Part shown: one piece after another, positions 325 through 42,131 of the stretch | Layout: every line of letters starts with the position of its first letter | Numbering within the stretch: the first letter of the stretch is position 1 | Translations under genes and position numbers: made by a program | The notes under the pieces: generated by a model | Told to the model about the DNA's origin: nothing | The model's database searches: none | Seen by the model: only the letters and a program-made list of their open reading frames with translations | Assembly: GCA_977017575.1 (NCBI GenBank) | Contig: CDRNVI010000140.1 | Location: 62,001-126,000 of the forward strand | DNA length: 64,000 nt | DNA from: Paramoeba atlantica | Lineage: Eukaryota > Protista > Discosea | Reading direction: 5' to 3'

Positions 325-325
325 A

Positions 326-505: not shown

Positions 506-1020
506 TCTTTTCAATCCCATTTTCAGAGACAAACCACAGGAAACACACAAAAAGAAAAAATGGGCAAAAAGCTTATCTCAAATATGGGTAATAGACCCTA
601 TTATTTAGACACCTAAATTTTGGTTATTTTTCATTTGCCCATTGGAGCTACAGCCTGTTGAGATGGTGAAAGCAATCCAATTCCTTATAGAGCAAAATGA
701 GAAATTGATGAGGCAGAATGAACATACTACAGTGAAAGAGATGGTTGGGAAGACTTTGTACAAGTCTCATGAGAGTCATCTCAAACTGGCTCTCAAGAAT
801 ATCAATTTCAAAGATCCATTGCAAGTTACTTGTTTCTGTGTTCAGGGTGAATGCAACTTGGAACAAGATGTTTGGCCCAACACACTTGAATTTGGAAGTC
901 AAATCAAACTTGCAATAACTCTCCCCACTGGTAGTTGGAATCTCTTAGGACTAAAGAAGGATGCTGGATTGCCAAGAGATATATTACTCACTCTGAATAG
1001 CTCTTTTGGGAGGCAGAATG

Positions 1021-1591: not shown

Positions 1592-1608
1592 GATTAAGAG
1601 TCTAGGCT
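1592..1608 (+). promoter_or_regulatory. Primer-binding site complementary to the anticodon arm of tRNA-Lys(CUU)
   Basis: GATTAAGAGTCTAGGCT abuts the LTR; its reverse complement AGCCTAGACTCTTAATC contains the tRNA-Lys anticodon loop GACTCTTAATC. Confidence 0.65.
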
Positions 1609-4600
1609 TCCGGCCTGAGTTTTGTTTTTTGAAAGTTTATCCTTCCTCCTCTTTCATCTTTGTTTTCTGGAAGCAGCGATTTCGAATCACTGTCCTCTCT
1701 GTTCTTTTTCATGTTTCTTTTCATGTGTTTTTTCTTTGTGTTGAAAACTCATTTTTCGTGTTTTGTTTTTTTGGGTCATGGTTATGGTTTTTGGCCAATT
1801 CTCGCGATTGTGATTCTGGCATTTGTGAATCTTGATTGTTTTCTCATTTGTTTGTTTTTGTTTTCTTGTTTTCTTCTTCATTGAGAAAGTCTATTTGTTG
1901 TTCTGTGAACTGAGCATCAAAATTGGAAACCATTTTTCAATTCCTGTTCTTTGTTTCAAACCAAGGAGATCAAGTTCTTTTGGTTTTGTTTTGAGTGAAG
2001 AAATTCTTCTCGGAAGATTTCTTTGCACCTCTGATCCTTGTTCTTGTACTTCTACACCTTAAGCCTGTTTGTTTTGTTTTCGGTCTCTTGTTTTTGTACT
2101 TTTGGATCGAGACTTTGTCCCTCATTGTCTCACTTTGCCCTTTACATTTTGTTCATTGCTCTTGATGATCATTCTGTCGTTTGTTCATCTTGTTGAATCT
2201 CTTGGTACGTTTATTTGTTGGTTTTGCTCCCGTCTTGAGATGTTTTCGATAATTCCTCATTTTATGAAGCGCATGTCTCATCTGTTTATTGTGTTCACGA
2301 CACATCTACAGTATTTTTGATCCTTCTTTTGTGGAATGTTTTTCCTGTTTGGATTTTATGTTTTGGACAACAATTTTGTCATTTTTGGTTTTATGGCTGC
2401 AATTAAGCTTTCCGTTTTGGTTTTTGGATCTTTCTTGTAGATGATCCTGGTTATTGATTTTTTGGCACTCTTGGCATGGATGATTGACATTTCTTTGTTT
2501 GTTTTCGTGATACAGAGCTGGTCATTCTCTTTTATCCCTCTCCTTTTGATTTATGTGGACGCACCATCTCTTCTATCCTCAGCGATCCCATTATCACTTA
2601 TTCTCCCCCCTTCTATCAGCCCTGACAAGGCATCAGCTTTTTAGCTTTCAGCTTACGATTTTATACCAGTGTGCACTGTTTTGAATTATATTTCTGGCAG
2701 CCATCTTTGACCTAGCACATGGTTTTTTGATAAGCACAGTTCTGATCACACTTGTTTTTGTTTTTCTCCTTATGTCATAGAAGATTCATGTTATTTTTCT
2801 CGTTTCTTGGAGATTATTCTTGTATTTGTCGATGTTTTTCTTTGCCTGTCATGACACTCTGTTTTGACTTTGTTCTTTGTTTTGTCCAACTGTTTTTTTG
2901 GTTCTATTCCTGTTTTATGGATTCTCTCTGCCTTTGATTCGCTCGAGACGATTTCTTGTTGATTTCCATGCTTCATTTTCGTTGGTAAATCAATTCAGTC
3001 CTCTTGCTCATTGTTTGTTTTGGTTATTTGTCTTTGGTTATGCTTTCAGAACAGCATATCATTTGGAATTAACATTCTTTTGCTGTTTGCACTTACACAG
3101 CACTGTTTCCTCATATAATCTTGACTTGAGTTTTGTTTGTCAACATTTCTCAATGCCTCTTCATGTTCCTCAATCTCTTCTTTGTGTTGGATATTGTGAT
3201 TGTTGATTCTATTCGAAAATTTTCATGATTCCTTCTGTTATTTCGATTGGTCTTTGTTGATGTTCGCCTCATGCTTACAAACTGCATTTTGATGATTACT
3301 TTATTGTTGATTTTGAGTTGAGCCCTGATCAAGCTTTCTCTCTTGATTCAATGAATGTTTGTTATCATTTGTATTGATTGAGTAATGGTTGTGTAGTTTT
3401 AATACTCATTTCTATCTCATTTTGGATTTGTGGATTTGTATTTTCGGATTTTTTTGTTCCTCAACTGCCACTTCTGATTGTGAATTTTATGATTGTGGAT
3501 TTGCCTGACTGGATTTATTCTTATGCTTGACAATTTCTCGTTTTGTTTTGTTTCCTCGAAGCTTGATTGGATTTTTCCCTCTGTCTTGATGATGTTCTTA
3601 AAAATTCCTGATATCTTCAAAGTAATTCTGGATTGAATTTGTACTTCTTGAATCTGAATGTACTCTGTTGTTAACCTCTTTGGATTTTTCACTTTGTTAT
3701 CTCAAATTCCCTGCCTGTGAATTTGAACTCTTATTTCTGATTGAATTCATCCCTGTGTTGATTTTATTGAAGAAATAATTGATTCCATCTCCTTGTTTTT
3801 CTTGTGACAATGTCATTCTGAATTTGTCATTCTTGGATTGATGCCTTGGGACGATTCTTCTTGTTCTTTTGTTTTTGGTTGATGATGGAAATTCTCCTGA
3901 TTTCCTTCCTTGCTTTGAAATTGTCGAATTTATACCTTCCCTTACCTTTTGTGATTTCGATTCTGGACTTTATTTTCACTTGGATTCCTCTCTCGGATAC
4001 TCCTACTTGAATTTTGAAACCCATTTTAGTGTTGGAAGGGTGTTCCATTAAAAAATTGTGTTTGTGTAATTTCGGATGTACCACCCCCAAAGCTGTTTTG
4101 ATTTTGGTTACTGCACTTTCCCTCAAGTTATGACCTTTCTAATTTGATCTGTTTGTTTTGAAGTTGACTTGATTGCTGATGCTTCTCTCTTATCATTGAT
4201 ACTCTCTGTTCTAAATTTCTTTTCTCTTTGAGAAACCTTGATTCACATTTTCCTCTGTCATAGTCTCATGTTTTTGTTTATTCTCTGGTAATGATGCTGA
4301 TTCTTGAATTTGATTTGTAGTGGCTCTATTTTCAGCAAGTTCCATTGAGCATCTTGCACCATTTACACCCTATCCTAATTATTGGTTGATTTATTGGAAT
4401 TAAGTCTTTTCTTGGTCTTTGATAAGTTGATTTTGGATTTCCTCTGTCGATTCGGTTTTGTGATTTGATGGTTAATACTCTCTCTTGTTTTGAAATGCCC
4501 TTATTGTGATGAGATCAAAATATCAAATTGGAAGAGAGCATTCATGTGACTCATGACTAATTTCTTGGCTTCACCTAAAAACATTTTGGTATTATTCGAT

Positions 4601-6105
4601 TTCCTTTGTTATTCCCCATAGTTTATTCTCATCAAATTATTGTTGTGCAATCTAATCTTTTGATCTGATTCTCGCTCTCCAATTCTCTCTTGTTTTATGG
4701 TTGATTGTGAATGTTGTTCCTTCTTCCTCTGTTTCGATGTTATCATCATTTTTGGAGATTGTTATCCCATTTCTTTCTGTTCTGCCTGCAATTTGATGAC
4801 TGCTTTTGTCTTTGCAATCCCTTAGACAATGCCCTCTGATGTTACTTTGCTTTTAAGACACCTGTTACCTTCAAAGGGAGTTCTCATGTCCTCTCTTTGT
4901 TCTTTTGTGACTCTATTACCTCGTCTTTGTTCTTTCAAGGGAGTTCTGAGTTTTATTTTCTCTAATTCTCTGAGTCTTTGTTTTTCTCACCCTTGCAATG
5001 GATTTTCACTGGCCCCATGACATTTTTCCTCGATGTTCTTCTTTCGGCTTGTATTCTTCTCACCTCTCTTCTCAAATCTCAATGCAATTGTAACATTTGT
5101 TGATTTGATCAACATTTATCTTTTGTGTGACAACATATTTGTTCCTACATACATGATGTGCGATTTATCTTTGAAAATTCATCCCCTGAATTTTGGAAAT
5201 GCATACCTGGAATGCTTTGCCTCTGAACCATGTTTTCAGCACTATTCTGGATGATCTTTTTTGTCTTTTTTGTTGTTGCTGCACTCCATTCCTGTTGCTC
5301 TCTGTCCAATGTTCTTCTCACCCATTCCTAATCATCTCTGAAGCTTGTGACACCTTGATAATTTCTGCTGGACTTTTGATTTCTTTGTCTCTATTGAAAT
5401 CATTTTTGATTTTCTACTCTCAATCTCACCGGTTCATCTTATGATGACTTGTTTTGCTTTTCTCTGAAAGATTCTTCTTTTCAACATCTTCAGCACCTTC
5501 CTCTCTCAATGATGAGTAAATGTAGCATACCCAGAGGAACTATGCAATAGTGATTCCTGTTGAACACTTATCCTTTCTCCCTTCCAATCCTCGCTCAATG
5601 ATGAGTGAACATAGCATTTCTGAGGATTCAATGCACCACCTGTGTCTCCAGTAGTGAACACAAATCCCTCTCTTCCTATTTCCTGCTGTTTTTGTTGGAT
5701 CGATTTCTCCTTTTCTGGGTTGTATTATTTTTGAATTCCTGAATTGAATTTTTCTGTCTTGTTCTCCATGTCCATGCCTTAAGTTCTCTGATTATTTCTT
5801 GTGCTCTCGTGTTGATCCTGCTTTTGCTTCAAAGTAATATGTTTTGGATTATTGATTGCTTCTGCACCAATTCCTTATGTTTTTCCATTCTGTTTGACTG
5901 ATATTTGTTCTTGTGATTTTGTGATTCATTTTGATTTCCTTGATGGCTTGATATTTGGTTCAATGATGGGTCTCTGTCTGTTCACCTCATCTTGATTTGC
6001 TGTGCTAAATGTAAATCCCACTTGTCTTGCTGCTTTGCTTTAATTGTTCTCGATTTCTGATGTGTTGTGAAATTCCTTCTTCTGATTTATGTGAAACATA
6101 TTCAT

Positions 6106-6116
6106 TTGGAAGGGTG
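6106..6116 (+). promoter_or_regulatory. Polypurine tract of LTR-1 element
   Basis: TTGGAAGGGTG immediately before the 3' LTR; compare GAAAGGGAG before the copia 3' LTR. Confidence 0.7.
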
Positions 6117-6687
6117 TGTCAGAATCCTGGTGTGAACTGATTCCATGTTGTGCAAATTAATCTGTTTCTCTTTGTACACCACTGTGCTCCCCTGTTGTGT
6201 GAATATCCCTGATGAACATTTGTAAGACTGTACAGACCATTCTGATTCTACATGTATTCCTGTCTCTCTCATCTGAGCTCTTCCCACCCAGTTCTCACTC
6301 TGAATTCAAGTTGTTTCCTTAATATTTTCGCACCATCTTATTTGTTTATTTTATATAATCTTTATGTCAATTAATCCTGTGTTCTGTAACATTTATCTGT
6401 GATTTAATCTCTCCACCACGTCCTTTTTTTTGTGTGTTTTTGTCTTTCATTCTGTTTTGCTTCTTGTCAATTCCACACTTGTTATATTTGTTGTCCCATA
6501 TGAATACTCCTTTTGTTTGTTGGTAAAAAGAATAAACTTACTTGGTTGGTTTCCCCTTGCGATGCGCTGCCAATCTTTCCCATGATTTGCTCTTGACTTT
6601 TCTCTTTCTTTCTTTTCCCTTTCTTTCCTTTTCTTCTTTCCTTCACCTGCCCACTCTTTCCTTCTCCAAACTCCTGGCCACTTCACA
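6117..6687 (+). repeat. 3' LTR of LTR-1 element
   Basis: Direct repeat of 1021-1591, followed by the TSD GAATG. Confidence 0.95.
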
Positions 6688-7380
6688 GAATGCAGTCCTT
6701 TCAGACAAAAAGAAATTCAACATTTTTCGAGTTCCTGATGAGAAGGTAACAGAAGACAATTTTCGACTTGTCACCTCTGAGTATATCCATCTTTTCTTGA
6801 AGGCAAAAGATACTGAATTGGACAAACTGGCTGTGAAGGAAGTGATGAAGGATTTTGGAAGAAGGTTTGAGAACCCAGCCTTTCAAGGAAAGTGGGACAA
6901 GTTGGCTGAGAAGGAAGAAATCTGGAATGAACTGATCCAAAATTTCTTAGAAGATATTGAGTTTACCCAAGTTGTAGTGAATCCTCAGGGTCTGAATAAA
7001 TTGTCTATGAGGAAAACAGACAAATACCAAAGGACAAAGAAAAGGCTGGGGAGGGGTCAAGAAAGATCCATTATCTGCTTCCTCATTATGGAATTTTTGT
7101 ATGGTGCCAACATGTCAATATTTGATTGGTTTTGTTTTAATTTAGAAGAAAAAGGGGTTTTTATTTCTAAATATGGAAGAGAAGTTTGAAAAAAAACCTT
7201 GAAATCAAAAAGACATTTGATTCTTTCAAGTGTATAAAAAATTGAATGTACAACTTTTAAAAAAGTGCTTTTTTAAAAACAAACTTCAGAGAACAATTTA
7301 ATTTTGAGCAAGCAAAAAGTAGAACCTTTCTCCTTCTTTTGTGGCATTGGTTTTGTTTTTGATTTGTTGAGAGAGTGAAG

Positions 7381-10209
7381 ATGAACAATTTGATTTTTGA
7401 GTTTGCCCAAGATGAGAATAGTCATGTTCATTTCAAGAAGGAAGAAAAAAGTCAAAAACAAAAACAAAAAAGTGAAAACCAAGGATCAGTCAAAAAAGTG
7501 GAGCAGGAACAAATGATCAAAACCCTTGAAAGAGACTTGTTTTGTGTTTTTTCAACATCAGGTTTCCCCAAGAACCCAGCAAATACCTTCTCATCTCATT
7601 TTTTCCAAGTTAAAGGGAAGATTGAGGCAATTCAAAACTTTCACAAAACTGCTTGTCATCTTGTTTATCAGAAGCTTGACACTCAAGTTCAATTGACTCT
7701 TAAAAACTTGCGATCTCAAAGTGACAGTTACTCATTTCCATTGAAAGAACAAATTTGTTTATTGAATATCAAAATTGAAAACAAAAAAAAGATGTGTTTT
7801 CTTCCTGAGATGTTGTCAGAAGAAGAAAAACAGTGTGAACTGCTTGCAATTGCTGAAGATGAAGAGTTAATTTTGTTTTTGAAGGACTTTCTCTTTGAAT
7901 TTGAAGCTGAAAATCGATATTTTGGAAGGTATTTGGAAGAAGAGTGAAGATTTTTGGAGAGTGGACAAAATATAAGCAAAAAAAATCAATTGCCTCCAAA
8001 CCCACCCCAAACCTTGAATGGACAAAAATGGTTGCTGAATATGATGAAAGCTTTTCGTGACCATGAAATGTTTGATGGAATGAAATTCCTTGAATTGTGG
8101 ATAAATTACATTGTTTTAAAGTGAAGCTTTTTTGAAACGAAATTTAAGACTGCAATGAATATTGTTGAAACTGTTCTTGATGAATTTGAGTCTGAAGTAA
8201 AAGAAGCTATTCAAATTCCACCACAACAGATGGCTTTTATTCTTGATAGCGCAAATATTTCTGTTAACAAGTATTGAATATTGGTAACTGCAGTTCAGCA
8301 ACATTTGAGTAGAACTAAATTTGAAGCCTTAAATTGTTTTTCTGAAGTGAAGGATGTTAAGAATGAAATTTAAAAACTTGAGCAGAAGGTCACCAACTTA
8401 TTTGAATTAAATGAAGATCATTCAAAGGAACAAAAAAATCAAGAAGTTGCTTGTTGTTGATTAGCTGTGGTGATTGACTGGATTTGTTGTTGTTTGGTAG
8501 GTGTTGATCAATGTAGTCCTGCAGCAATATGGAAACTTCATTTGGACACTCAAGAGATCTACAAGGGGAGAAACCAAGTTATTTTTTCTGTTCAACCTAT
8601 CGGTTTGCCTCTTTTCCATTTTACTTGTACTGCAACTAAAGGAAAAAAGAGGGGATTAAAAGAGAATCAGCAGTGGGCAAAAGATAGCTGCTATTTTGTT
8701 TTTTCTTTCCTTATCTTTCAAGGGAAAGAGGACATTTCTAGTTACTCAAAAGCAATTCCAAATCATGTTTTTTCAGATTTAATTCGATTTGAACATGATG
8801 GTTTACACTTTGAACTGCATCCTGAGAAGGTCAGTGGTACTTGGAAAAATCATGAATATTTACCAAAGTGCGATGAAGATGACTTGAAATGGATTGGAGG
8901 AATTTTATTTGAATGTAAAAGTGGTGACCAAAAGGAGTGGAGAGGGGGGCATCATTCACAAAGCAAAAGAAAATTTTCTTCTTTAACTAGTTCCCAAACA
9001 TGTTGTGGGGGGTGACATGGTGGTTTTCAGGAGGGAAAGTGGAAAGTGGTTGGAGGGATGCTAAGTGGCAATTGAAGAGATTTCAATGAAGACCTCAACT
9101 TGAAGATTAAGAATGTAGACCCAAAAGATTCTATTCTTTTATTGGATGCTGCTGGTGTAAGCTTAATGTACCATTATGTTTGTGGTTGGCAGATTCACAC
9201 TCTTCCACCAATCTTAGGCAATGAAGAAGACCCCACAATGTCACCAAAAGAATCTTTTTCGAGTACTCAATCTTGCAAACCTTTGACAAAAAAAAAATGT
9301 CACTGCTGTGTCTTTGTAATGTGTGGTGATCTCAAAAGTATGTGGGCACTGTTTGGATTTTGTTCTGGAATTTTTGGAAAAGAACAATATCCTTGTTGTA
9401 CAATTCAAAGGGTTGATCATTATGAAAAAGATGGTAAAATCGCATGGCAAGGGTACCAACCAGGTGATCCAATTCCTCTCTCTCCTTGTCTTCAATTCGT
9501 AATGTGTACTCTGCATGGTCTTCTTCAAATAATGGAATTTTCATTGGAGGTTCTCATTGCTGACTGTTGAAACAAAAATATTAAAACTGCTGGTAGCACC
9601 CCAACAATCACAATGGTCAAAAATGCATCTCAAATGAAACAAAAAGTTAATCATTCAAACTTTTGCTTGTATCATTCAATCAGTGGGAAAAAAGGAAGAG
9701 AGTTGGTTTCTGAGTTCAAAACTCAAATTCAAAATAAATTAAAGAAAAATAAGTGGGTGCCAGAAAAAGTATGCTCTTGGATTGGGGTTGGGGGGAGGTC
9801 TTAACAGAAATGCCATGATGAACTCAATCTCTTGCTTTTCTATCGATATTCTAACAAGAATACACAATTTCGAGAAGAGGAAAAATGGTTGGAAGGATTG
9901 AACAGCAAGTCATTGCAGGACAAATAGAAATCAAACTTTTGTAAGGAAAAGATATCAAAGAACTCATCTCATTCAATTTTGAGAATTGATTTAATAGCAA
10001 AGTGGTGGGCTGACTTTCAAGATTTCTCTTTACATTCATTCTCATCATTGAACTCACCTTTGTCTTCCTTACCCTCCTCATCTTCATCCTCTTCCTCTTC
10101 TTCTTTCTCTTCCTCTTCCTCTTCCTCTTCTTCTTCTTCACCTTCCTCTTTCCTTTTGTTGAAATCTCATCTAGAGGAAGAATATGAGAAAAGCTCCACA
10201 AAAGAATGA
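7381..10209 (+). pseudogene. DDE transposase, RAG1/Transib/Chapaev-like (degenerate)
   Basis: Largely one frame with TGA/TAA stops explicable as CGA/CAA transitions. Motifs: IPPQQMAFILDSANISVNKY*IL, WKLHLD (first Asp), FQGKED, CGDLKSMWALFG (second Asp), QYPCC, CTLHGLLQIME, SGKKGRELV. The third acidic residue is not securely placed (candidate LEGLN); the 3' end is approximate. Confidence 0.62.
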
Positions 10210-12329
10210 TTTGAGAAGAATCACTCATTGAAGACCAAATCATTGAAGTTGCTGGCCTTTGCGTTTTCTAAATGCAAAATTCCTTTTTGATTCCGAGTTG
10301 GTGATGATGGAAATTGGAAATTGGGGCAATACACAGGCACTCAAATGTGGCAAGTATTGGAGAATGTTGAAAGGATCTTTTGTTGCAATCCAAATCAACC
10401 ATCCACAATATTGTTGTGGGTTACCTTTTGAGAATGTTTTCAAATGCTGACAAGTAACCCCTCAAAAGGGTCAAATCGTGAAACAGTTGCTATTAATTTT
10501 GAAAAAAAAATTGGTTCTTAGAAGGAAAGTTTTGCAGATTGGGGAGAGATGGGTTCCACCTAGTGAATTTATTTCCATATTCTGGAAGCTCATGCAGCAG
10601 ATATGTATTGTCAGTTTAGGAATTTGTGACCTTGGGCAGCAGAAGCTGGGGAGCAGGTCCACTACTTGGATCAGATGCACTTCTATCAGAGTAACCAATG
10701 AGATTCTGCAAATCTGAACACTAAAGTCCTCACAACTGGACTTGTTTTCGATACAGCCATTCTTTAACAAATCAATATCAAACCTCTTTGGATATCCCAC
10801 AAGAAATTCAAGCAATCCAAATGAATTTAAATCGAAGAAATGAAGTGGTGACAAACCCAAAATTAATTCAAACTGCTCAGGAAGACCTTTTCCTCACATG
10901 GATGTATGATCTCAAAACTGAAATTTCTTTGGAAGAAGATAGTGATGAGAAATAAAATTTAAAAGTTTTTTATCAATTTCACTTCAACCAATTTTTTTAG
11001 AGGCTTTGGTTTGTGTGTTGCTTTCCTTTTATTTAGTTTTTCAGAGGATTTGATTTTTTTTTATGATTAACAAAAGATGCACCCATCATTTTCAACCCTA
11101 AATTGAGTGGCAAACTCATGTGAAAGTAATGACAAGTACAAATGGCCATTGCAGATTCTGGTGAATTTTTCCAAAGGATTTGAAGTTCAGAGAGACCAAC
11201 ACCACAATCACTTTCCCTCCAATTGAAACCCAAATATTGGCAAAATAACAAACCGAAGTTTGAAGCATCTTTATGGAGGAAGGTTCCACAGCCTCTTCCA
11301 ATCCAAATTTGTTGAGTACATTTCATTGGAAGTTGAACTCTTATATCTTTTCCTGTTTCCTTCCAAGTTGTTTGAAATTTCTCACACATTCCAATCTGTT
11401 CTGCAAAAAAGTTTGAATTCTTTTTTAATCCAGTTATTCACTTCATCAAGCAATACTCTCTTATCTCATATGCAATTAAAAGAGATGAAAGAATTTTCTT
11501 CATGTTGTCTGTTAGATGTTGAGTTTGAGCTCATTCCATTAAAGAGTTTTGAATTTTGTGAAGCCCAAAAGCTATGAGGTTCTACCCTCAAGCATTCTGC
11601 TTACATTTTGGTAGGAGAAGGTTCAAAGAGAGAAGCAAAGATTGAAGAATTGACATTTCATAAACCTCCTCTTCTGAAGCTACCTGGGAGCAAAAAAACA
11701 TGTCATTATGACCACTCTGAAACAAAATGTATAAATCCCTAGAAACAACATTTAAAAGGTTTTCCTCAACCAATAAATCCAAGTGCTTTAAAAACCCACT
11801 TAATCAATCTGAAAGTTGTTCCAAAATTTTGAGTCTGTTATTCAATTCTGGATAGATTCGAAGCCAACCTTTCCGATCCCATTTGTTATTTAACCCCCCT
11901 TCTGCCTCATCATTGAACCGAAGGATTTTCAATCCTTTCATCAAAAAAGCAAAATCAAAAGAAGTGAAGTCCTTCCTTTGAGCTTCGGAGGGAATCTTCT
12001 GGAAGTAACAATCCAAGTAGGAATGCATTCAACATGCAATCATGTGATCAGGTGTGAGAAGATGGCCTCGAAAACAAACCCCACTTCTTTCAAACTCAAA
12101 AACACCATGGTCCCCTTCACTTCCCTCAATTTTTAAATTCCAAATTTTCAATTGGATTTGCTTTGATAAGTTTTCCCAAAAAATGTTCAATTCTTGTCAA
12201 ATCTCTTAAGCGTTTTGAAAGCAACCCATTTTTCTCAAACTCTCCAAGTTTTTTGCCCTGCCTGCCTGCCTCACAAATTGTATTTGGGATATTTAGCCAC
12301 CACTCCTTTCTAAAATTTTTCAACAACAA
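9851..12329 (-). pseudogene. Unknown transposon-borne gene convergent with the transposase
   Basis: Chain of minus-strand ORFs (12126, 11804, 11588, 11033/11116, 10471, 10240, 9851) that is conserved in copy 2 (36134-38563); ends in a purine-rich low-complexity tract; no domain recognised. Confidence 0.5.
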
Positions 12330-12640
12330 AAAAATTCAAAAAGTTCCTCAAATTGAACTTTTTGAAGTGTTAAAATAAAAAAAGAGTATTTTTACTTCTC
12401 CACAAAAAAAAAAGTTTTTGTGAAAAAGGTTTTAAACCTTCAATAAAACTAAAAAATCCTTTTCAGAGGGAATTTAATTCATTTGAAATATTTAGCCACC
12501 ACTCCTTTCTAAAATTTTTCAACAATAAAAAAATTCAAAAAGTTCCTTAAATTGAACTTTTTGAAGTATTGAAATAAAAAAAGAGTATTTTTGCTTCTTT
12601 ACAAAAAAAAAGTTTTTTTGTGAAAAAGTTTTCAACCCTT
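12289..12640. repeat. Tandem duplication (~199-bp period) between divergent genes of the transposon, each unit with a 12-bp-arm palindrome
   Basis: ATATTTAGCCACCACTCC... at 12289 and 12488; TTCAAAAAGTTC-N8-GAACTTTTTGAA at 12335-12366; also duplicated in copy 2 (~38570-38900). Confidence 0.85.
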
Positions 12641-12683
12641 TCTTCCCTCAGTTTTCCACTTCTATTTTCTTTTCCTTTCCACA

Positions 12684-13850
12684 ATGAAGTGTTTATATTG
12701 CAATTTTAAGATTCAAAACAGTTCAGTTCATTATTGTTTCAAATGCAATGTCCTTTTTCATAGAAGTTGTTTGTTGAAAGAAAAGACTTGTCCAGCAAAA
12801 TGTCTCCTCCAACTGTTTCTCCAGAATCAAAACCCAGACTTCATCAACTTGAAACCCACAACCCCAACACAATTTGTCTTTGAGAAGAAAAGTGTTCATT
12901 ATTGACACTTTTTTTCTGAGGAGGAGGATTATTCATTTTCCAGAATCAATTTTGGTTCAGTGGACAGGATCAAATGAGACACATTTTCCCTTTCCCAAGT
13001 GGACTGGGAAGCAGGGTATTGGAATCAATTGCACATTATTAAGAAATCTAATGAGGAGGTGATGGATTTCTCTTATCAGGGCAATCAGTCTCTTGAACCA
13101 AAAACCTTTTTGGGGTTCTATATTGGGCACTTGACTGATTCTGAGGATAGAGATCAAAACCATCACCAAATGGTCTTGCAAAATAAATGGAAGATTGATG
13201 ATTCCTCAATTGGAAACAAAACTCGATTTGTGAATCATTCACACCTTCTTAATGTGGAATTTCGAATGGGGGGGTTGGCGCCTGTAGTTTAGTCGTAAAT
13301 TTGACTATGTCCAACCCTGGGGGGGCGAGTTCAAATCCCAGTTTTTCGATATTATGGAAAATTTTTCTGGTGCTGTAAAGTGATTTGATTGGAGTGAGGA
13401 GCTCTTGAAGAAGTGTGAAAATCAGAACAGGTTACATCTCAACCCTGTCTGCTAAAAAGTTGAGGATAAATTCCCTTGGAAGGAGCTTTGGATTATTCTC
13501 CCTTCTGATGTGCATCCTCCAGCCTGAACTTGCAGAAGTTCTAAAGTTCAGCATAAAGACCGACTGAACTAAGCTGAAGTTTAAAACTTCACCTCTTGTT
13601 AGAGGTTAAAAACAAACATAATTTAATGTAATTCAAATGGCTTAGATTAAGAACTACTAATTGAATAAAGTCTGCCTCAAAAAAAAAAAAAAAGAATTTC
13701 GAATGGGGTTTCTTGATTGTTGCTCTGGTTGGTTGCTCAGTTTAATTACAAAATCAAAAATTTAAAAAACACCAAACTTATTGCCAATTATCTCATTATA
13801 GTCTCCAATATTTCCAAGGGGTTTGATTATTGTGATTCTTGCTTGACAAG
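12684..13850 (+). pseudogene. Zn-finger + SET + post-SET protein carried by the transposon; interrupted by a SINE
   Basis: N-terminus CLYC...CFKC...FHRSC...CPAKC. SET motifs FLGFYIGHL and IDDSSIGNKTRFVNHSH..NVEF. After SINE removal the frame continues LITKSKI.KNTKLIANY; copy 2 adds DCNTAFCPGYIG (post-SET-like). Confidence 0.78.
13272..13693 (+). mobile_element. tRNA-derived SINE family B, full length
   Basis: A-box-like TAGTTTAGTCG, B-box GAGTTCAAATCC, AATAAA followed by poly(A), 15-bp TSD GAATTTCGAATGGGG at 13257-13271 and 13694-13708. Confidence 0.9.
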
Positions 13851-14335
13851 AACCAACTTCTTATGAAACATTTTCAACTCCACAAACAATAATTCAACTC
13901 CCACTTCCTCAATCTTTTCAAACCCAACCAAATTACAATTTCTGATCAGTTCCACAAAACCAAACTTCTTATCAAATACTTTCTATTCAATCATCCTAAC
14001 AATTCTAACAAAATTTCAATCCTTCACCCCAAATCTGATTTCAACAAAATGACAATTCACAAATTTATGGATTGGCTCAACAACCAATGTATCAATCAAC
14101 AGCAGTGGCAAACCCACAACCACTTCAAAATCCCTAACTATCAATGGTGTGTGGCAATGACACATCCTCACAAACCCAAGTATTTTTTTTTTGGATTTGA
14201 ATATTTCTCTTTTTCAATTAATACTTTTTATTAATTCATTTTTTTCAAAATTCAGATGAATCAAATTCTTTTACATCAAAGGCAGATGCAGCAAGAACTT
14301 AACAAACTGAAAAAGTTAGTTTTTTCATTTACTAA

Positions 14336-15183
14336 TTAAATTTTTTTCCCTTTTTTTTTCAACATTTTACTAACAATGGAAATAGATCCAAAAAATAGTT
14401 TTATTTTTTTCAAAATTTTTTTGTAAAATAAATTTAATTTTGTTTCAAAATAATTCAACAAATAATTTCCTTCAAGTGCAACAAAAGCCAGATGCATTTG
14501 TAACTTCAATGATTCCACAGCATTTGAATTGACTTTTTTTTTTTGTAAATTTTAAAATCAACTCAGATTCACACTCAATTTTCATCAGTTTGAATAACAT
14601 TAGATTCAATCCAATGATAAAAAACAATATTTACCTTCTCATTTAAAAAAATGTTGCTACAAGAACTTTGTGAAAGAATCTTTTTGGTTCACCATTCAGA
14701 ACAGTTCAAAAAGCAAGAATCCAGTTTTTTTAAATCATCTTAAGAACAGATTCGAGCACATTGTCCTGATTCATCAACTTGAAACTTCACTTTTTTGAAT
14801 TTTTTCAATGGTTTCCAAAAAATCTTACAGAAAATTTGTTTTGGCAATGGTAGCTGAATCCAAAAAGATTAAATTCATTTCTTCAAGGCAAAATCAAGTC
14901 ACTTTTCAAATTCAGGAAGAATCATGGAGTTCACCCACCACTTTGTCTCATTCAAATTGAAACTCTCTTCATCAACAGGAATGGTCTCTGTCAACAGTGG
15001 CTGCTGTGTTTTTTCTACTCCTCTTTTTTGGCGTTTTCTTCACTTCTCAACGGTTTTTTGTTTTCTCTTTTTTGTTTGTTGAATTTTCTCAGTAATGAAA
15101 TCAATCTCCATGATTTCATCTAATGAGATTGAAGGTTCTTTTGGTGTTCGTTTTGGCAGTTTCTCATTTCCTTTCATTGCCAT
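14336..15183 (-). pseudogene. Fourth transposon-borne gene (unknown, Lys/Arg-rich N-terminus) starting next to the right TIR
   Basis: Minus-strand frame MAMKGNEKLPKRTPKEPSISLDEIMEIDFITEKIQQTKKRKQK... with TGA stops at probable CGA codons; colinear in copy 2 (~41190-42037). Confidence 0.45.
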
Positions 15184-15907
15184 AATCAAAAATGGAGAAC
15201 AAAATGAAAAAAAGTCCAATTTATTTTTTAATCAATCAAATATTGACACATTGGCACCATACAAAAATTCTATAATGTTTGTTGGGGTAGTCATTCCCCC
15301 AAAAAATGTTTCATTCTGGATGAATTGAAACAGGAAGCTGCTGACTGCCTTGGAAGGGAATACTGTTTTCTTTATGGAAGATGTGACCATAAGAGCCTGG
15401 AGTGCCTTTGGTTAAGTGTTGCAAAATTCATAACAGAAAGAAAGATTAAACTTGTAGGAGATCATCCCTGGAAGGAAGCTGTGACTTGTTATGGTGAGTC
15501 TGCAGCTCAAAAATACAATTGTATAGAATCTGCTGACTGGAATAAGAAACTTCCAGGGAAAAGAGGAAGAGAAGTCCCTCAAGAGAAGAAGAAAGAAAAG
15601 AGGAGAAAATTGGAGAATACTCTTCAAGATTTGATGACTGGGAAAATGACTCTGGATGAGCTCAGAAATCAAGAAAATGGTTTGTCAATTTTTTCTAAGA
15701 GTAAAAAGGAATTTACTCAGAATATTGGGCAGCAGGACCACAAAGTGACAGTCAAGATGGGTGAAGAAGGCTTCACAATCTCTATTGGTGACTTAGTTAG
15801 AGACTTAAATCCTGAAATTTGCCAAATAAAAGACAAATTATTCACTATTCCTTGCATGGTTAATAATACCAAAAAAGCACAAAATAGTTGCTTTTGCAAG
15901 CCTGGCT

Positions 15908-16174
15908 TTGCCAAAAACTCATACAAAATACACAAATTCAGAACAAGAATGTTATGGGGCCTACTGGGCAATTAACAAGTTCAAAGAATTCATTATGGGA
16001 AGAGATGTAGTGATCTTCAGTGATCACCAGAGTCTGGTCAAACTGTGCAACTCCACAACAAGCACATCAAGGAGTGAACTTATCTGTGGATGGCTGCTGG
16101 AAATAGCTGCAGTGGCAAATCGAATTTTACATCAACCTGGGAAAACACTGGTTATCTCTAACACACTTAGTTGA
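15908..16174 (+). pseudogene. Gypsy A RNase H fragment
   Basis: ORF contains YTNSEQECYGAYWAINKFKEFIMGRDVVIFSDHQSL, a typical Ty3/gypsy RNase H pattern. Confidence 0.8.
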
Positions 16175-34898: not shown

Positions 34899-37800
34899 CA
34901 TTACAGAATTTTTGTATGGTGCCAATGTGTCAATATTTGATTGGTTTTATTTTAATTTAGAAGAAAAAAGGGTTTTTATTTCTAAATATGGAAGAAAAGT
35001 TTGAAAAAAGCCTTGAAATCAAAAAAACATTTGATTCTTTAAAGTACATAAAAAATTGAATGTACAACTTTTAAAAAAGTGTTTTTTTAAATACAAACTT
35101 CAAAGAACAATTTAATTTTGAGCAAGCAAAAAGTGGAACCTTTCTCCTTCTTTTGTGGCATTGGTTTTGTTTTTGATTTGTTGAGAGAGTGAAGATGAAC
35201 AATTTAATTTTTGAGTTTGCTCAAGAGAATAGTCATGTTCATTTCAAGAAGGAAGAAAAAAGTTGAAAACAAAAATGAAAAAGTGAAAACCAAGGATCAG
35301 CTGAAAAAGTGGAGCAGGAACAAATGATCAAAACCCTCAAAAGAGACTTGTTTTGTGATTTTTCAACATTAGGTTTCCTCAAGAACCCAGCAAATATCTT
35401 CTCATCTCATTTTTTCCAAGTTAAGGGAAAGATTGAGGTGATTCACAACTTTCACAAAACTGCTTGTCATCTTGTTTATCAGGAGCTCAACACTTAAGTT
35501 CAATTGACTCTTAAAAACTTGCAATCTCAAAGTGACAGTTACTTATCTCCATTGAAAGAACAAATTTATTTATTGAATATCGAAATTAAAAACAAAAAAA
35601 AGATATATTCTCTTCCTGGGATGTTGTCAAAAGAAGAAAAACAGTGTGAACTACTTGCAATTGCTGAAGACAAAGAGTCAATTTCATTTTTGAAGGACTT
35701 TCTCTTTGAATTTAAAGTTGAAAATCAATATTTTGGAAGGTATTTGGAAGAAAAGCAAAGATTTTTAGAGAGTGGATAAAATATAAGCAAAAAGGATCAA
35801 TTGCCTCCAAACCCACCCCAAACCTTGAATGGACAAAAATGGTTGCTGAATATGATGAAAGCTTTTCATAGCCATGAAATGTTTGATGGAATGAAATTCC
35901 TTGAATTGTGGATAAATTATGTCATTTTAAAGTGAGGCTTTTTTGAAACAAAATTTGAGACTGCAATGAATATTGTTGAAACTGTTCTCAATAAATTTGC
36001 CAAAACTCAAATTCAAAACAAATTGAAGGAAAATAAGTGGGTGCCAGAAAAGTATGTTCTCAGATTGGGGTTGAGGGGAGGTCTCAACAGAAATGCCATG
36101 ATGAACTTAATTTTTTGCTTTTCTATTGATATTTTAACAAGAATACACAATTTTAAGAAGAAGAAAAATGGTTGGAAGGATTGAACAGTGAGTCATTGCA
36201 GGACAAATGGAAATTAAACTTTTGTAAAAAAAAGATACCAAAGAACTCAGCTCATTTAATTTTGAGAATTGATTTAATGACAAAGTGGTGGGCTGACTTT
36301 CAAGATTTCTCTTCATGTTCATCCTCATCATTGAACTCACCTTCATCTTCCTTATCCTTCTCATCTTCATTCTCTTCCTCTTCCTCTTTTTCTTCCTCTT
36401 TGTCTTCTTCTTCTTCACCTTCCTCTTTCCTTTTGTTGAAATCTCATCTGGAGGAAGAATATAAGAAAAGCTCCACAAAAGAACAATTTAAGAAGAATCA
36501 CTCATTGAAGCCCAAATCATTGAAGTTGCTGGTCTTTGCATTTTCTAAATACAAAATTCCTTTTCGATTCTGAGTTGGTGATGATGGAAATTGGAAATTA
36601 GGGTGATACACAGGCACTCAAATGCAACAAATATTGGAGAATGTTGAAAGAATCTTTTGTTGCAATCCAAATCAATCATCCATAATATTATTGTAGGTTA
36701 CCTTTTGAGAATGTTTTCAAATGCTGATAAGTAACCCCCTAAAAAGGTCAAATTGTGAAGCAGTCACCATTAATTTTGAAAAAAAAATTGGTTCTTAGAA
36801 GGAAAGCTTCACAGATTGGGGAGGGGAGATGGGTTCCACCTGGTGAATTTATTTCCACATTCTAGAAGCTCACACAGTAGATATGTATTGTTAGTTTAGG
36901 AATTTGTGACCTTGGGCAGCAGAAGCTGGGGAGCAGGTCCACTACTTGGATTGTATGCACTTCCATCAGAGTAGTCAACAAGGTTCTGCAAATCTGAACA
37001 CTAAAGTCCTCACAACTGGACTTTGTTTTTAATATAGCCATTTTTTAGCAAATCAATATCAAACCTCTTTGGATATTCCACAAGAAATTTGAGCAACCCA
37101 AACAAATTTAAATCAAAGAAGTGAAGTGGTGATGGACCCAAAATTGATTTGAACTGCTTAAGAAGACTTTTTCCTCCCATGAATGTATGATCTTGAAACT
37201 GAAATTTCTTTGAAAAAAGATGGTGATGAGAAATAAAATTTATAAGTTTTTTATTAATTTCACTTCAACCAATTTTTTTGAGAGCTTTGGTTTGTGTGTT
37301 GCTTTCCTTTTATTTAGTTTTTCAGAGGATTTGATTTTTTTTTATGATTAACAAAAGACACACCCATCATTTTCAACCCTAAATCAAGTGGCAAACTCAT
37401 GTGAAAGTAATGACAAGCATGAATGGCCATTGCAGATTTTGGTGAATTTTTCCAAAGGATTTGAAGTTTGGGGAGACCAACACCACAATCACTTTCCCCT
37501 CAATTAAAACCCAAATATTGGCAAAATGACAAACCAAAGTTTGAAGCATCTTTGTGGAGGAGGGTTCCATGGCCTCCTCCAATCCAAATTTGTTGAGTAC
37601 ATTTCATTAGAAGTTGAACTCTCATATCTTTTCCTGTTTCCTTTCAAGCTGTTTGAAATTTCTCACACATTCCAATCTGTTCCACAAAAAAGTTTGAATT
37701 CTTTTTTAATCCAGTTATCCACTTCACCAAGCAATGCTCTCCTATCTCATATGCAATTAAAAGAGATGAAAGAATTTTCTTTATGTCATCTGTTAGATGT

Positions 37801-40800
37801 TGAGTTTGAGCCCATTTCATTAAAAAGTTTTGAATTTTGTGAAGCCCAAGAGCTATGAGGTTCCACCCTCAAGCATTCTGCTTACATTTTGGTAGGAGGA
37901 GGTTCAAAGAGAGAAGCAAAGATTGAAGAATTGACATTTTATAAACCTCCTCTTCTGAAGCTACCTGAGAGCAAAAAAACATATCATTATGACCACTCTG
38001 AAACAAAATGGATAAATCTGCAGAAATGATATTTAAAAGGTTTTCCTCAACCAATAAATTCAAGTGCTTTAAAAACCCACCTGATTGATCTGAAAGTTGT
38101 TCTAAAATTTTGGGTCTGTCATTCAATTCTGGATAGATTCAAAGCCAACCTTTCTGATTCCATTTGTTATTTAACCCCCCTTCTAACTCATTGTTGAACT
38201 GAAGGATTTTCAATCCTTTTGTCAAAAAAGCAAAATCAAAGGAGGTGAAGACCTTCCTTTGAGCTTCAGAGGGAACCTCTTGGAAGTAATGATCCAAGTA
38301 GGATGCATTCAACATGCAATCATGTGATCAGGTGCAAGAGGACAGCCTTGAAAACAAACCCCACTTCCTCCAAACTCAAGAACACCATGGTTCCCTTCAC
38401 TTCCCTCAATTTTTAAATCCCAAATTTTTGATTGGATTTGCTTTGATAAGTTTTCCCAAGAAATGTTCAATTCTTGTAAAATCTCACAAGTGTTTTGAAA
38501 GTGGTCCATTTTTCTCAAACTCCTCAAGTTTTTTGCCTTGCCTGCCTGCTCCACAAATTGCATTTGAGGTATTTAGCCACCACTCCTTTTTAAAATTTTT
38601 CAATAATAAAAAAATTCAAAAAGTTTCTCAAATTGAACTTTTTGAGGTATTGAAATGAAAAAAGAGTATTTTTGCTTCCCCACAAAAAAAAAAGTTTTTG
38701 TGGAAAAAGTTTTAAACCTTTAATAAAACTAAAAAATCCTTTTCAGAGTTTAATTCATTTGAAATATTTAGCCACCACTTCTTTTTAAAATTTTTCAATA
38801 ATAAAAAAATTCAAAAAGTTCCTCAAATTGAACTTTTTGAAGTGTTGAAATGAAAAAAGAGTAGTTTTGCTTCTCCACAAAAAAAAGTTTTTTTGTGAAA
38901 AAGATCTTTCAACCCTTTCTTCCTTCAGTTTTCCACTTCTATTTTCTTTTTCTTTTCACAATGAAGTGTTTATATTGCAATTCTGAGATTCAAAACAGTT
39001 TAGTTCATTATTGAGGTTTCTTGATTGTTGCTCTGGTTGGTTGCTCAGTTTAATTACAAAATCAAAAATTGAAAAAAACACCAAACTCATTGCCAATTAT
39101 CTCATTGAAGTCTTTGATATTTCCAAGGAGTTCAATTATTTTGATTGCAACACAGCTTTTTGTCCAGGTTACATTGGATACTCAAATTATTGTGGTGGTT
39201 CCTATATGGATTTTTTGAAGCAAACATCATGGTTGGCATGAGTCTTCCCCACTTTGAAACCACAATAAAAGTGGATACAAACTCACCCCAAATTGACCAT
39301 GAGAAAAAAAAATATTTCAACCTTAGTGAACAAACAAAAAAGGAGGTTACTTTTTTTTCATCAGTTTCAGCTCAGGAATTGGTGAGTCTTCAACTTACCA
39401 CCCTCAGTTCTGGATTTGGGAAGAGGTCCTTGAAGAAGGTTCCTTTTGGTATTTGAATCCCAGAAAATTATAAAATTTGCAAAGCAACAAAACTTTCCCT
39501 CCCCTTTTGAGGCCTCTTATCTTCGATGAAAAGAAACCACTTGTTGGTCAAGTTGAAACCCTCTGTAGTTAGGGGAAACAGGGATATTCCTGCTTGCTCC
39601 AACTCTGCTTACCCTTTCCAAATCAAGGGGATCTTTTTGTTGGAAGTAATTCTTGTAGTGAACCATGGGATCCATCAACATCACTAACTTTGTGCCCACT
39701 TTTATTTCTAAAGGATTATTTGCTGGTTCTGAGTAAGAAAGAACTTTTTGATTCATTGCTGAATGAAGTTTTCATTTTTATTCAAGAAGATAATTTCCCT
39801 GCAACCAGCCAAGTGATTTTAGAGAAGTTGAACCCCTCCAAACCACTCAATCCAAGGGATGTTTTTGAACTTGTTCACTCAATGCCATTGATTAAAGAAA
39901 AGATTCAATTGAACAGAGTGGATTCTCTTTTTCCAAGTTCTGATTACCTCTTCATCAAGGCCTTGAACACTGACTGTCATCTCCCTTGGCAAAAATCAAC
40001 CAACCAAAAAGCCTCAAAGGAGTTTCAACAAGGAAAGGAAATGCCAAAGCACAAGAGGAAGGAAAAATCAGCCTGAGAAACCTCTCCTCTTCCCTCAATG
40101 ATCCCCAAGCAACCTCAGACTGCACATCCTCAAAATAATAAGAAACAAACTCCAAAACCCTCCCTGTGTCCCACATAACACAACCATTCAGAAGATTACA
40201 TTTTCAATTCCTTCCCAAATGAAAAAAAGCAAAAAAAAGCCAACATGAATAAGGAAACTGATCACTCATTACCAGCAACCTCATTTCCATGAGGTTCCCC
40301 ACTTCCCCAATCACCAGAACTTCAACAATCTCCTTCACCAACTGAAACTAACCAATCCTTACAACCTGAAAAACCTGTCTCCAGTCAATTAATACTCCAC
40401 TCTCCTTCAACAAAAATGAAACAATTACAATTAAACACCAATCCACTAACTTTTGAGCTAATGATTTCAAATGTACCAACACTTGACCACATTTAACAAT
40501 TCCACTCTAATTCCACTTCCTCTGATCCAATAGATTGAAACAAATCTATAATTCAACAACTGCCACTTCAGTCTTTTCAATCAAATTCCACCCTCATTCC
40601 ATTCAAAGAAGGAGCAACAAACCCCTATCTTTTTATTCAAAATCAACCACCACCAATACCTCAGGTCATTCAAATTCAATCCAACCCATTTTTTCCTTGA
40701 CAAGAACCAACTTCTTATGAAACATTTTCAACTCCACAAACAATAATTCAACTTCCACTTCTTCAATCTTTTCAAACCCAACCAAATTACAATTTCTGAC

Positions 40801-42131
40801 CAGTTCCACAAAACTGAACTTCCTATCAAATACTTTCTATTCAATCACCCCAACAATTCCAACAAAATTTCAATCCTTCACCCCAAATCTGATTTCAACA
40901 AAATGACAATTCACAAATTTATGGATTGGCTCAACAACCAATGTATCAATCAACAGCAGTGGCAAACCCACAACCACTTCAAAATCCCTAACTATCAATG
41001 GTGTGTGGCAATGACACATCCTCACAAACCCAAGTATTTTTTTTTTGGATTTGAATATTTCTCTTTTTCAATTAATACTTTTTATTAATTCATTTTTTTC
41101 AAAATTCAAATGAATCAAATTCTTTTACATCAAAGGCAGATGCAGCAAGAACTTAACAAACTGAAAAAGTTAGTTTTTTCATTTACTAATTAAATTTTTT
41201 TCCCTTTTTTTTTCAACATTTTACTAATAATGGAAATAGATCCAAAAAATAGTTTTATTTTTTTCAAAATTTTTTTGTAAAATAAATTTAATTTTGTTTC
41301 AAAATAATTCAACAAATAATTTCCTTCAAGTGCAACAAAAGCCAGATGCATTTGTAACTTCAATGATTCCACAGCATTTGAATTGACTTTTTTTTTTTGT
41401 AAATTTTAAAATCAACTCAGATTCACACTCAATTTTCATCAGTTTGAATAACATTAGATTCAATCCAATGATAAAAAATGATATTTACCTTCTCATTTAA
41501 AAAAATGTTGCTACAAGAACTTTGTGAAAGAATCTTTTTGGTTCACCATTCAGAACAGTTCAAAAAGCAAGAATTCAGTTTTTTTAAATCATCTTAAGAA
41601 CAGATTCGAGCACATTGTCCTGATTCATCAACTTGAAACTTCACTTTTTTGAATTTTTTCAATGGTTCCCAAAAAATCTTACAGAAAATTTGTTTTGGCA
41701 ATGGTAGCTGAATCCAAAAAGATTAAATTCATTTCTTCAAGGCAAAATCAAGTCACTTTTCAAATTCAAGAAGAATCATGGAGTTCACCCATCACTTTGT
41801 CTTATTCAAATTGAAACTCTCTTCATCAACAGGAATGGTCTCCATCAGCAGTGGCTGCTATGTTTTTTCCACTCCTCTTTTTCAGTGTTTTCTTTGCTTC
41901 TCAACAGTTTTTTGTTTCCTCTTTTTCATTTGTTGAATTTTCTCAGTAATGAAATCAATCTTTATGATTTCATCTAATGAGATTGGAGGTTCTTTTGGTG
42001 TTCATTTTGGCAGTTTCTCATTTCCTTTCATTGCTATAATCAAAAATGGAAAACAAAACGAAAAAAAGTCTGATTTATTTTTTAATCAATCAAATATTGA
42101 CATGTTAGCACCATACAAAAATTCTGTAATG
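34899..42131 (+). mobile_element. Large TIR DNA transposon, copy 2 (transposase core and SET core deleted)
   Basis: TIRs at 34899-34943 and 42087-42131; colinear with copy 1 apart from deletions; interrupts gypsy B Pol just after the protease. Confidence 0.9.
38961..41240 (+). pseudogene. SET-gene remnant in transposon copy 2: retains the post-SET region and a long C-terminal region missing from copy 1
   Basis: MKCLYCN start fused to FLDCCSGWLLSLITKSKIEKNTKLIANY...DCNTAFCPGYIG, followed by ORFs 39145 and 39594 and a Q/P/S/T/N-rich tail. Confidence 0.6.

Follow-up and report, generated by a model that had tools for sequence, protein, structure and literature searches.

To our knowledge, DNA transposons that carry TET/JBP genes have so far been documented only in three fungal lineages, and those that carry SET genes only in oomycetes. 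Iyer et al. are said to have described, in 2014, Kyakuja-Dileera-Zisupton (KDZ) transposons with TET/JBP genes. The CMCT clade, composed of CACTA/EnSpm, Mirage, Chapaev, and Transib together with Plavaka, ESTA, Lanisha, and RAG1, is characterized by C(2)C and H(3-4)H motifs, CA..TG termini, and target-site duplications (TSDs) of 2-5 bp (Kojima 2025, PMC12730594). Complete TET/JBP genes exist in 11 lineages of fungal DNA transposons, including EnSpm, ESTA, and Plavaka. Escape from methylation or from silencing resembling repeat-induced point mutation (RIP) has been proposed for these TET-carrying elements, which encode no additional modifying protein (PMC12730594). SET genes have been captured by the HarbingerS and MuDR elements of Phytophthora (Repbase Reports 2014, as cited in PMC12730594). 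Here, we describe a transposon family of the protist Paramoeba atlantica that appears to pair the two kinds of cargo. Two copies lie in a 64,000-nt stretch of contig CDRNVI010000140.1, called the window, whose coordinates are used throughout. We consider it likely that the family is an extinct CMCT-type transposon that carried TET/JBP-like, SET, and small basic genes, the first two of which would have kept it active against silencing.

The window is eukaryotic in composition, repeat-rich, and 30-40% G+C. A degenerate 45-nt terminal inverted repeat (TIR) pattern that starts with CATTAY (CATTAYRGAATTTTTGTATGGTGCYAAYRTGTCAATATTTGATTG) has four exact matches in it, at 7084(+), 15277(-), 34899(+), and 42131(-); zero are expected by chance, and none occurs in 100 shuffles. 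These matches delimit copy 1 (7084-15277) and copy 2 (34899-42131), each bounded by CATTAY...RTAATG inverted repeats. Specifically, the left TIR of copy 1 (7084..7131, +) begins CATTATGG and the right TIR (15230..15277, -) ends ...CTATAATG. The TIRs of copy 2 lie at 34899..34946 (+) and 42084..42131 (-), and the inverted arms of both copies reach 48-63 nt. A first-pass annotation of this DNA had proposed two copies with 45-bp CATTAY TIRs and a size of about 9 kb; the boundaries hold, and the full element measures about 9.3 kb. As a pair, the copies are real and 90.8-96.7% identical (blastn: 92.4% over 7084-8188, 90.8% over 9717-12736, 96.7% over 13836-15277), but they are not equivalent, as each has deletions of its own. 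Copy 2 lacks 8189-9716, the transposase core, and 12737-13703, the SET core, which leaves copy 1 as the only window copy with a SET core. The 1,543 bp at 39147-40689 of copy 2 have no counterpart in copy 1. The full-length element is a 9,306-bp composite, as shown by two further copies, L004 (6054-10183) and L009 (5348-14509). It consists, in order, of copy 1 to 13267, 13699-13837, copy 2 39147-40689, and 13838-15277. The right 1.44 kb of the window copies (13836-15277 versus 40690-42131) aligns without gaps at the 96.7% identity given above, versus about 91% elsewhere, which could be due to gene conversion or to a separate history of this segment.

Evidence that the element moved comes from additional copies. 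Loci L001-L009 are on contigs of one ENA assembly (ERZ24900291), and P numbers designate protein or open reading frame (ORF) matches. A match to a transposase piece led to these contigs, as did later searches that used the ORFs of the right end, of TET, and of SET. Because the assembly holds the element at 86-94% identity and, at 96% identity, the same short interspersed element (SINE) that interrupts copy 1, we take it, on these sequence matches, to be the same genome as that of the window or a very close one. L003-L009 supply at least 10 further element copies or fragments. Identical termini are present at at least 12 different loci: each of the five right ends terminates in ...TAATG, each of the four left ends opens with CATTA, and 9 of 9 examined ends are CA...TG, with flanks that are unrelated between loci. 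L009 shares the transposase-core deletion of copy 2; of the L006 copy, only the part from that same junction onward was recovered. The SET-core deletion of copy 2 is likewise shared by L006, by an L003 fragment, and by the ORFs P0030 and P0031. Internal deletions common to copies at different loci show that deletion derivatives were mobilized in trans, and thus provide direct evidence of transposition. At L003 (7773-8028), one element copy sits inside the TET gene of another, inverted copy. We conclude that this is a real, extinct, multicopy, four-gene TIR transposon family of about 9.3 kb.

All copies carry the mark of one mutational process. We aligned nine copies over 2.5 kb and counted substitutions against the majority sequence: 794 are transitions and 22 are transversions (36:1), the transitions comprising 318 C>T, 283 G>A, 97 A>G, and 96 T>C. 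Both the window (0.18 over its whole length) and the element have a CpG observed/expected ratio of 0.16-0.18. When C/T and G/A polymorphisms are polarized in the direction of C-to-T damage, each copy has changes at 48% of inferred CpG cytosines versus 8-14% of those in other contexts (about 5-fold), and the inferred ancestral element is 42% G+C with a CpG observed/expected ratio of 0.84. This pattern is a RIP-like or all-context methylation/deamination signature. Reversal of the damage was guided by the polymorphisms, and the reversed and majority sequences were used only to count stops and to delimit ORFs. In the transposase frame, the 19 stops of copy 1 fall to 10 in the majority sequence and to 1 after reversal (1,143 codons), whereas the other five frames keep 34-71. 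The ORFs that open after reversal have 1134 (+), 419 (-), 284 plus 462 (+, same frame), and 235 (-) codons. As reversal reopens all four frames, we conclude that the ancestor had four intact genes, which cytosine-to-thymine change then inactivated.

Gene 1 is a RAG1/Transib-like transposase pseudogene. In copy 1, it occupies 7381..10810 (+) as an intronless single frame of at least 1,143 codons; in copy 2, a remnant (35195..37092, +) lacks a 1,528-bp catalytic core, deleted at 35999/36001. Translation from 7375 onward gives a single frame with stops and no frameshift, and copy 1 has a probable frameshift near 10750. Because tblastn alignments with P0003 and P0005 cover 9217-10743 in copy 1 (and extend to 37110 in copy 2), the gene reaches well past 10209, where the first-pass annotation had ended it; the single frame runs to about 10810. 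A HMMER search with the piece 9076-9567 against 1.84 billion representative proteins produced nine matches, eight of which are true relatives. The ninth, P0009, is a weak match (E = 4e-5) to an unrelated repetitive protein. The relatives include a near-intact gene at L001, a decayed paralogue at L002, and five metagenomic fragments. At L001 (1725-6130), removal of an 83-nt GT-AG intron (4054-4136) puts two ORFs, exons 1725-4053 and 4137-6127, into one frame of about 1,440 aa, with a B-box-like Cys cluster at the C-terminus. Neither the L001 nor the L002 gene has TET or SET neighbors, and a TIR search around them uncovered low-complexity repeats only. Either an active element without cargo or a domesticated gene could account for L001. 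Since L001 and L002 share only the transposase, the TET/SET cargo is specific to the element family described here.

Alignment of the window copies, L001, L002, and P0002-P0008 reveals a series of conserved transposase blocks. WK(L/V)H.D, followed by QVV.SVQPIGLPL, is a plausible candidate beta1-beta2 pair for the first catalytic D. The other blocks are FLVFPFLIF.G.E (the GGE block), IP..VFSD..R.EHDGL.F, HHCVF.MCGDL...W.LFG.C.G..G.E.CP.C (MCGD-x20-CPxC), LHC.LR.G.FALE, and IYFHI.E.H.......G.L.PW..EAGE..H.LD (YFHxxExH-x13-W-x2-E-x2-E). Thus defined, MCGD-x20-CPxC and YFHxxExH-x20-E, the motifs expected of the CMCT clade, are present in all of these sequences. In P0003, residues D57, C77, C80, H507, H512, and E532 have successive zinc-module spacings of 20, 3, 5, and 20; the corresponding residues of mouse RAG1 (D708, C727, C730, H937, H942, E962) have spacings of 19, 3, 5, and 20 (PMC4914335). 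When the two halves of the protein are queried separately, the ESM Atlas neighbors of both include many clusters with RAG1_RNase_H, ZnC2, and ZnH2 domains; DUF1280 clusters, mostly nematode proteins, are also among them, and the scores of 0.80-0.88 make all of these leads only. Foldseek places mouse RAG1 and HzTransib at ranks 3, 4, and 26 of 350,542 chains for an AlphaFold2 model of the C-terminal half (P0003), with the highest probabilities among the matches listed. VIA-align superimposes model residues 415-526 on RAG1 847-956 and HzTransib 331-427 in the register predicted from the motifs, at Z scores of 4.0-4.8, which is the noise range for helices. We conclude that gene 1 encodes a CMCT-type DDE transposase whose zinc modules are spaced much as in RAG1; its likeness to RAG1 and Transib is supported for the catalytic architecture but not for membership of Transib proper.

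Gene 2 is quite likely a TET/JBP dioxygenase. It lies on the minus strand, convergent with the transposase, at 11036..12292 in copy 1 (about 419 codons) and at 37317..38572 in copy 2, and both copies are pseudogenes of a TET/JBP-like 2-oxoglutarate-Fe(II) (2OG-Fe(II)) dioxygenase. For a 134-aa piece of it, the ESM Atlas gives a top score of 0.95 with 200 shared features; 69 of the 100 nearest clusters are Tet_JBP (PF12851), as are all ten of the ten best named matches. Longer TET ORFs of 270-429 aa occur in other copies (P0014-P0016, L004 4616-5425) and contain GTLLHKDASNF, then PGSAMAIHACHYFHMSLP, then LKMMGVSF. The resulting arrangement HKD...PGS...H...K..S, with its distal His and K-x-x-x-x-S, is the HxD/distal-His/basic-residue pattern of 2OG-Fe(II) dioxygenases, and the layout is the same as that of the fungal transposon TET sequences in Kojima Table S1 (PMC12730594). 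Between the divergent TET and SET genes lie two tandem units of 179-199 bp (12271..12648). The arrangement is the same in copy 2, L004 has one extra unit (blastn), and the region is a probable shared promoter or regulatory region.

Gene 3 combines a zinc finger with a SET domain. In copy 1, its 5' part (12684..13267, +) starts at an ATG at 12684 that opens a CxxC..CxxC..HxxC..CxxxC finger and continues through the SET core up to NHSHLLNVEF, where the SINE interrupts it. The remaining SET and post-SET sequence follows at 13699..13863 (+) and is cut at 13837/13838 by the 1,543-bp deletion, which is specific to copy 1 and removes most of the C-terminal extension; the region is contiguous in L004 and L009. 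Gene 3 of copy 2 (38961..40715, +) retains the start of the finger, the SET C-terminus and post-SET, and an extension of about 460 codons, with the SET core deleted at 39013. The finger spans this copy 2 junction, and thus copy 1 carries the original sequence. Because P0027 reads from the SET C-terminus straight into the extension, and because in both the majority and the damage-reversed sequences the same frame continues for 462 codons past SET, gene 3 is probably a single gene of about 760 codons. It would encode the finger, SET/post-SET, a region of about 180 aa without a match, and a P/Q/S/T-rich tail. We rejected a minus-strand gene built from same-frame pieces at 39370-41067: reversal opens the 462-codon plus frame, and the minus frame keeps 12 stops.

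The Pfam SET model matches the piece 12978-13289 with E=0.003 and 18.4 bits, alongside weak RING and C1 matches. P0028 and P0032, which have an uninterrupted core in other copies, match it with E=0.009-0.02. PDB sequence matches are SET lysine methyltransferases in 11 of 11, 20 of 21, and 25 of 27 cases. The best of them, SETD2 (E=0.008), aligns on the RF.NHS core, and the histone H3 lysine 36 (H3K36) enzymes SETD2, ASH1L, and NSD lead. The SET core and post-SET contain the motifs IGN(K/E)TRFVNHS, KNTKLIANY, and CDCNTAFC..C. Although decayed, the SET domain is real, and it is most like the H3K36 class (SETD2/ASH1L/NSD).

The nested SINE (13268..13698, +) is tRNA-derived, has a poly(A) tail, and is a later insertion that does not belong to the element proper. 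It is flanked by a 15-bp TSD, GAATTTCGAATGGGG, at 13256-13270 and 13695-13709. Other copies of this SINE of about 430 bp are found at 49224-49652 and 19125-19876 (inverted) in the window and at 2907-3325 and 13355-13779 of L002, with TSDs of 10-15 bp. The SINE copies are 93-96% identical to one another, and this family spread later than the transposon. Where the shared SET-core deletion ends on its right side, it falls within the same 15 bp that the SINE of copy 1 duplicated, an unexplained coincidence of two independent events. An Rfam scan of the window and four loci, SINE included, gave no match, and the Rfam tRNA models do not recognize the SINE.

The fourth gene, ORF4, begins just inside the right TIR and reads inward (MAMKGNEKLPKRTPKE...). 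It spans 14572..15183 (-) in copy 1 and 41426..42037 (-) in copy 2, which are identical at 96.7% without gaps, and has about 200-235 codons. Its product is small and basic, with a KKRKQK/RRKRRKR stretch, and has no informative Pfam match. The reality of ORF4 rests on a frame that is open after damage reversal in an AT-rich stretch.

These results also bear on the gene content that the first-pass annotation had proposed. Its gene order of +,-,+,- is essentially right, and its SET gene is borne out by the Pfam match at E=0.003, by the SET methyltransferases among the PDB matches, and by intact-core ORFs in other copies. Its minus-strand ORF at 10474-10893 is spurious and antisense to the transposase tail; the real gene there is 11036-12292. 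That second gene, which it listed as of no known kind, indeed exists, and its probable TET/JBP identity had been missed. The label RAG1/Transib-like for the transposase agrees with the catalytic architecture, the spacings, and the language-model neighbors, but goes further than the profile searches, which give no RAG1, Transib, or Pfam transposase match at the level of hidden Markov models (HMMs). Two checks that it had proposed came out in favor of a genuine four-gene unit. Stop reversal, run with polymorphism data, reopens all four frames, and the cargo genes recur in every sufficiently complete copy, which excludes a one-off capture; the sister genes at L001 and L002 are without cargo.

The sites of insertion provide information on how the element integrated. 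Each window insertion interrupts a retroelement ORF, which in one case is gag-like with a CCHC (CX2CX3HX4C) knuckle and in the other resembles an aspartic protease; the flanking ORF pieces are 6542-7083 and 15278-15975 for copy 1 and 34438-34898 and 42132-42763 for copy 2. The immediate flanks are ...CCT and TTT... for copy 1, ...TCT and TGT... for copy 2, and ...TCA and AGA... for L009. No flanking direct repeat of 2 bp or more occurs at any of these three complete copies, and a single identical base is on both sides of all three (T/T, T/T, A/A; chance about 0.27 cubed = 0.02). Moreover, each split host ORF becomes a continuous 160-codon frame only on removal of exactly one junction base (+1 shift). 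The single shared base in all three complete copies suggests a 1-bp TSD, which is the simplest reading; the alternative is a small deletion at integration. A search for empty sites of the two window insertions and of four other ends, in all DNA examined, found none.

Several of our results weigh against an extinct CMCT-type transposon kept active by anti-silencing genes. No intact copy of the family was found in the window or in L003-L009. Pfam returned no transposase match for any gene 1 piece or relative and no RAG1_* model at E up to 1, the PDB profile search with the transposase returned irrelevant matches and no RAG1 or Transib entry, and there is no HMM-level link of the transposase to RAG1, Transib, Tnp2, or KDZ models. 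The AlphaFold2 model of its C-terminal half has a mean predicted local distance difference test (pLDDT) score of 51 and is usable only at 430-560. For the TET ORFs of 270-429 aa, Pfam, PHROGs, and PDB profiles, PF12851 included, gave no match; the AlphaFold2 model (P0015) has a pLDDT of 35, so that support from the fold is weak for the transposase and absent for TET. The SET scores of 15.5-18.4 bits (E 0.003-0.023, three copies) are below the Pfam gathering score of 22.4 (PF00856). The apparent 1-bp TSD, drawn from three complete copies without an empty site, is outside the 2-5 bp of the CMCT clade. Finally, the anti-silencing role is proposed by analogy with fungal TET-carrying transposons, whose own function is likewise a proposal (PMC12730594).

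What, then, could the cargo be if not functional? The TET and SET genes may be passengers, that is, host-gene fragments picked up by transduplication in the Pack-MULE style and never expressed or useful, in which case the element would be a Transib/CACTA-like transposon with junk cargo. Dead copies throughout, sister genes at L001 and L002 that have no cargo, and SET and TET HMM scores below threshold are all compatible with this notion. It does not readily account for four frames that reopen as long ORFs after reversal when most other frames stay closed, nor for the retention of the TET HxD/H and SET NHS/Y motifs. Unlike fragmentary transduplicates, moreover, the genes are each oriented in their own way and are accompanied by an intergenic repeat region, and complete TET cargo is widespread in fungal DNA transposons (PMC12730594). 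We regard passenger cargo as unlikely.

A distinctly unlikely alternative concerns the backbone rather than the cargo. Gene 1 could come from a different DDE lineage, known or entirely new, such as one that is KDZ-like, KDZ elements being the usual TET carriers, with a CxxC/HxxxxH/E spacing that arose by convergence. Such an origin would explain the lack of an HMM match to any RAG1 or Tnp2 model, Foldseek E values that never fall below 0.7 and VIA Z scores below 5 (the noise range for helical segments), and a 1-bp TSD that fits no CMCT member. Convergence would, however, have to produce four independent spacing matches together with the W-x2-E-x2-E string, on an element that also has CA..TG termini. 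It would likewise have to place RAG1-domain clusters among the language-model neighbors of both separately queried halves and the structural alignment in the predicted register. Nor do KDZ models fare better, as L001, L002, and P0002-P0008 have no Pfam match to a KDZ transposase or CxC domain and none to PF02992.

An origin of the window copies by segmental duplication or recombination, which would account for the lack of a normal TSD, is highly improbable: the absence of a TSD of 2 bp or more at either copy and the hint of gene conversion in the right 1.44 kb (96.7% versus about 91% identity) would fit, but the flanks are unrelated, five right and four left ends from different loci are cut at exactly the same base, a copy has inserted into another copy, and both window copies interrupt retroelement ORFs cleanly.

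How does the P. atlantica element compare with its closest described counterparts? Its CATTAY...RTAATG termini fit the CA...TG of the CMCT clade; in place of a TSD of 2-5 bp, there is one identical flanking base, from which the length is deduced. The ESTA, EnSpm, and Plavaka elements of rust and mushroom fungi are likewise multigene TIR elements with CA..TG ends, complete TET/JBP genes, and C-to-T-hypermutated repeats. Of these, ESTA is RAG1-like by HHpred (PMC12730594). ESTA has CACCAC..GTGGTG ends, is GC-rich, and has a TA TSD, whereas the element has CATTAY ends, flanks that are not TA, seemingly a 1-bp TSD, and a SET gene in addition. The element TIR is absent from the part of the PMC12730594 sequence file that we examined. 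EnSpm/CACTA elements have CACTA termini, a 3-bp TSD, and Tnp2 (PF02992); the element has CATTA termini, no 3-bp TSD, and no PF02992. As for RAG1 and Transib, the second D, CxxC, HxxxxH, and E of the element follow one another in the order and at the spacing of RAG1, W-x2-E-x2-E is shared, and RAG1-domain clusters, at a language-model proximity of 0.80-0.85, are the nearest named neighbors of its transposase. It differs from RAG1 in having about 430 residues, rather than about 207, from CxxC to HxxxxH. Transib/RAG1 elements have a 5-bp TSD and TIRs that resemble recombination signal sequences (CAC heptamer plus nonamer), whereas the element termini, CATTAYRGAATTTTTG, are not heptamer/nonamer-like and have no 5-bp repeat, and the transposase has no significant sequence or HMM similarity to theirs. 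The left convergent gene pair recalls RAG1L/RAG2L of ProtoRAG; a RAG2-like partner was considered and rejected, as the convergent gene is the dioxygenase and not a kelch propeller.

With respect to cargo, HarbingerS and MuDR of Phytophthora are also TIR transposons with their own SET gene, but their transposases are PIF/Harbinger and Mutator, and no TET partner is reported for them in the citing account. KDZ elements and the element have TET/JBP cargo and a presumed anti-methylation role in common; the element has no KDZ/CxC match and another catalytic motif architecture. The TET-plus-SET pair is not described in PMC12730594, and text searches of the literature gave no other description. The first-pass annotation had inferred an undescribed family with its own chromatin modifier. 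The pair is what is undescribed; transposons with a modifier, TET in fungi or SET in oomycetes, are already known (PMC12730594), and the element is not a categorically new system. We put forward only tentatively that it represents an unrecognized, superfamily-level RAG1/Transib-like lineage that has a 1-bp stagger and a cassette of a 5-methylcytosine oxidase and an H3K36-type methyltransferase, with L001 as an intact relative. Elsewhere in the window, the only non-repeat coding sequences recognized are two probable host genes, one for a protein with a RhoGEF (DH) domain (60682-62292) and one with a TAF8 C-terminal domain (54157-54708).

By analogy with the fungal carriers, the element is likely a double anti-silencing carrier. 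The notion is as follows. The transposase would excise and reinsert the element, apparently with a 1-bp staggered cut, as suggested by family membership and by the copies. The host attacks repeats via cytosine methylation and/or deamination, as shown by the 36:1 transition bias and its CpG preference. The TET enzyme would act on the element's DNA by oxidizing its 5-methylcytosine, and the SET enzyme would set a histone mark of an active or anti-repressive kind, the two together keeping the element transcribed. Deletion derivatives that lack the transposase core or the SET core were still mobilized in trans. The family then died, leaving every copy full of C-to-T stops.

These features bear on transposon biology in several ways. 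Because no Pfam model covers the transposase and 1.84 billion representative proteins include only eight relatives, it stands as a further deep branch of the clade that gave rise to the V(D)J recombinase, and L001 offers an intact member for biochemistry. If true, a 1-bp target duplication would be out of the ordinary for a DDE transposase and relevant to how the stagger is set by RAG/Transib active-site geometry. From the host side, the 36:1 transition bias displays the other half of the conflict in the very same sequences. If TET and SET genes indeed ride together on a RAG1-like backbone, then mobile elements can attack DNA silencing and histone silencing together.

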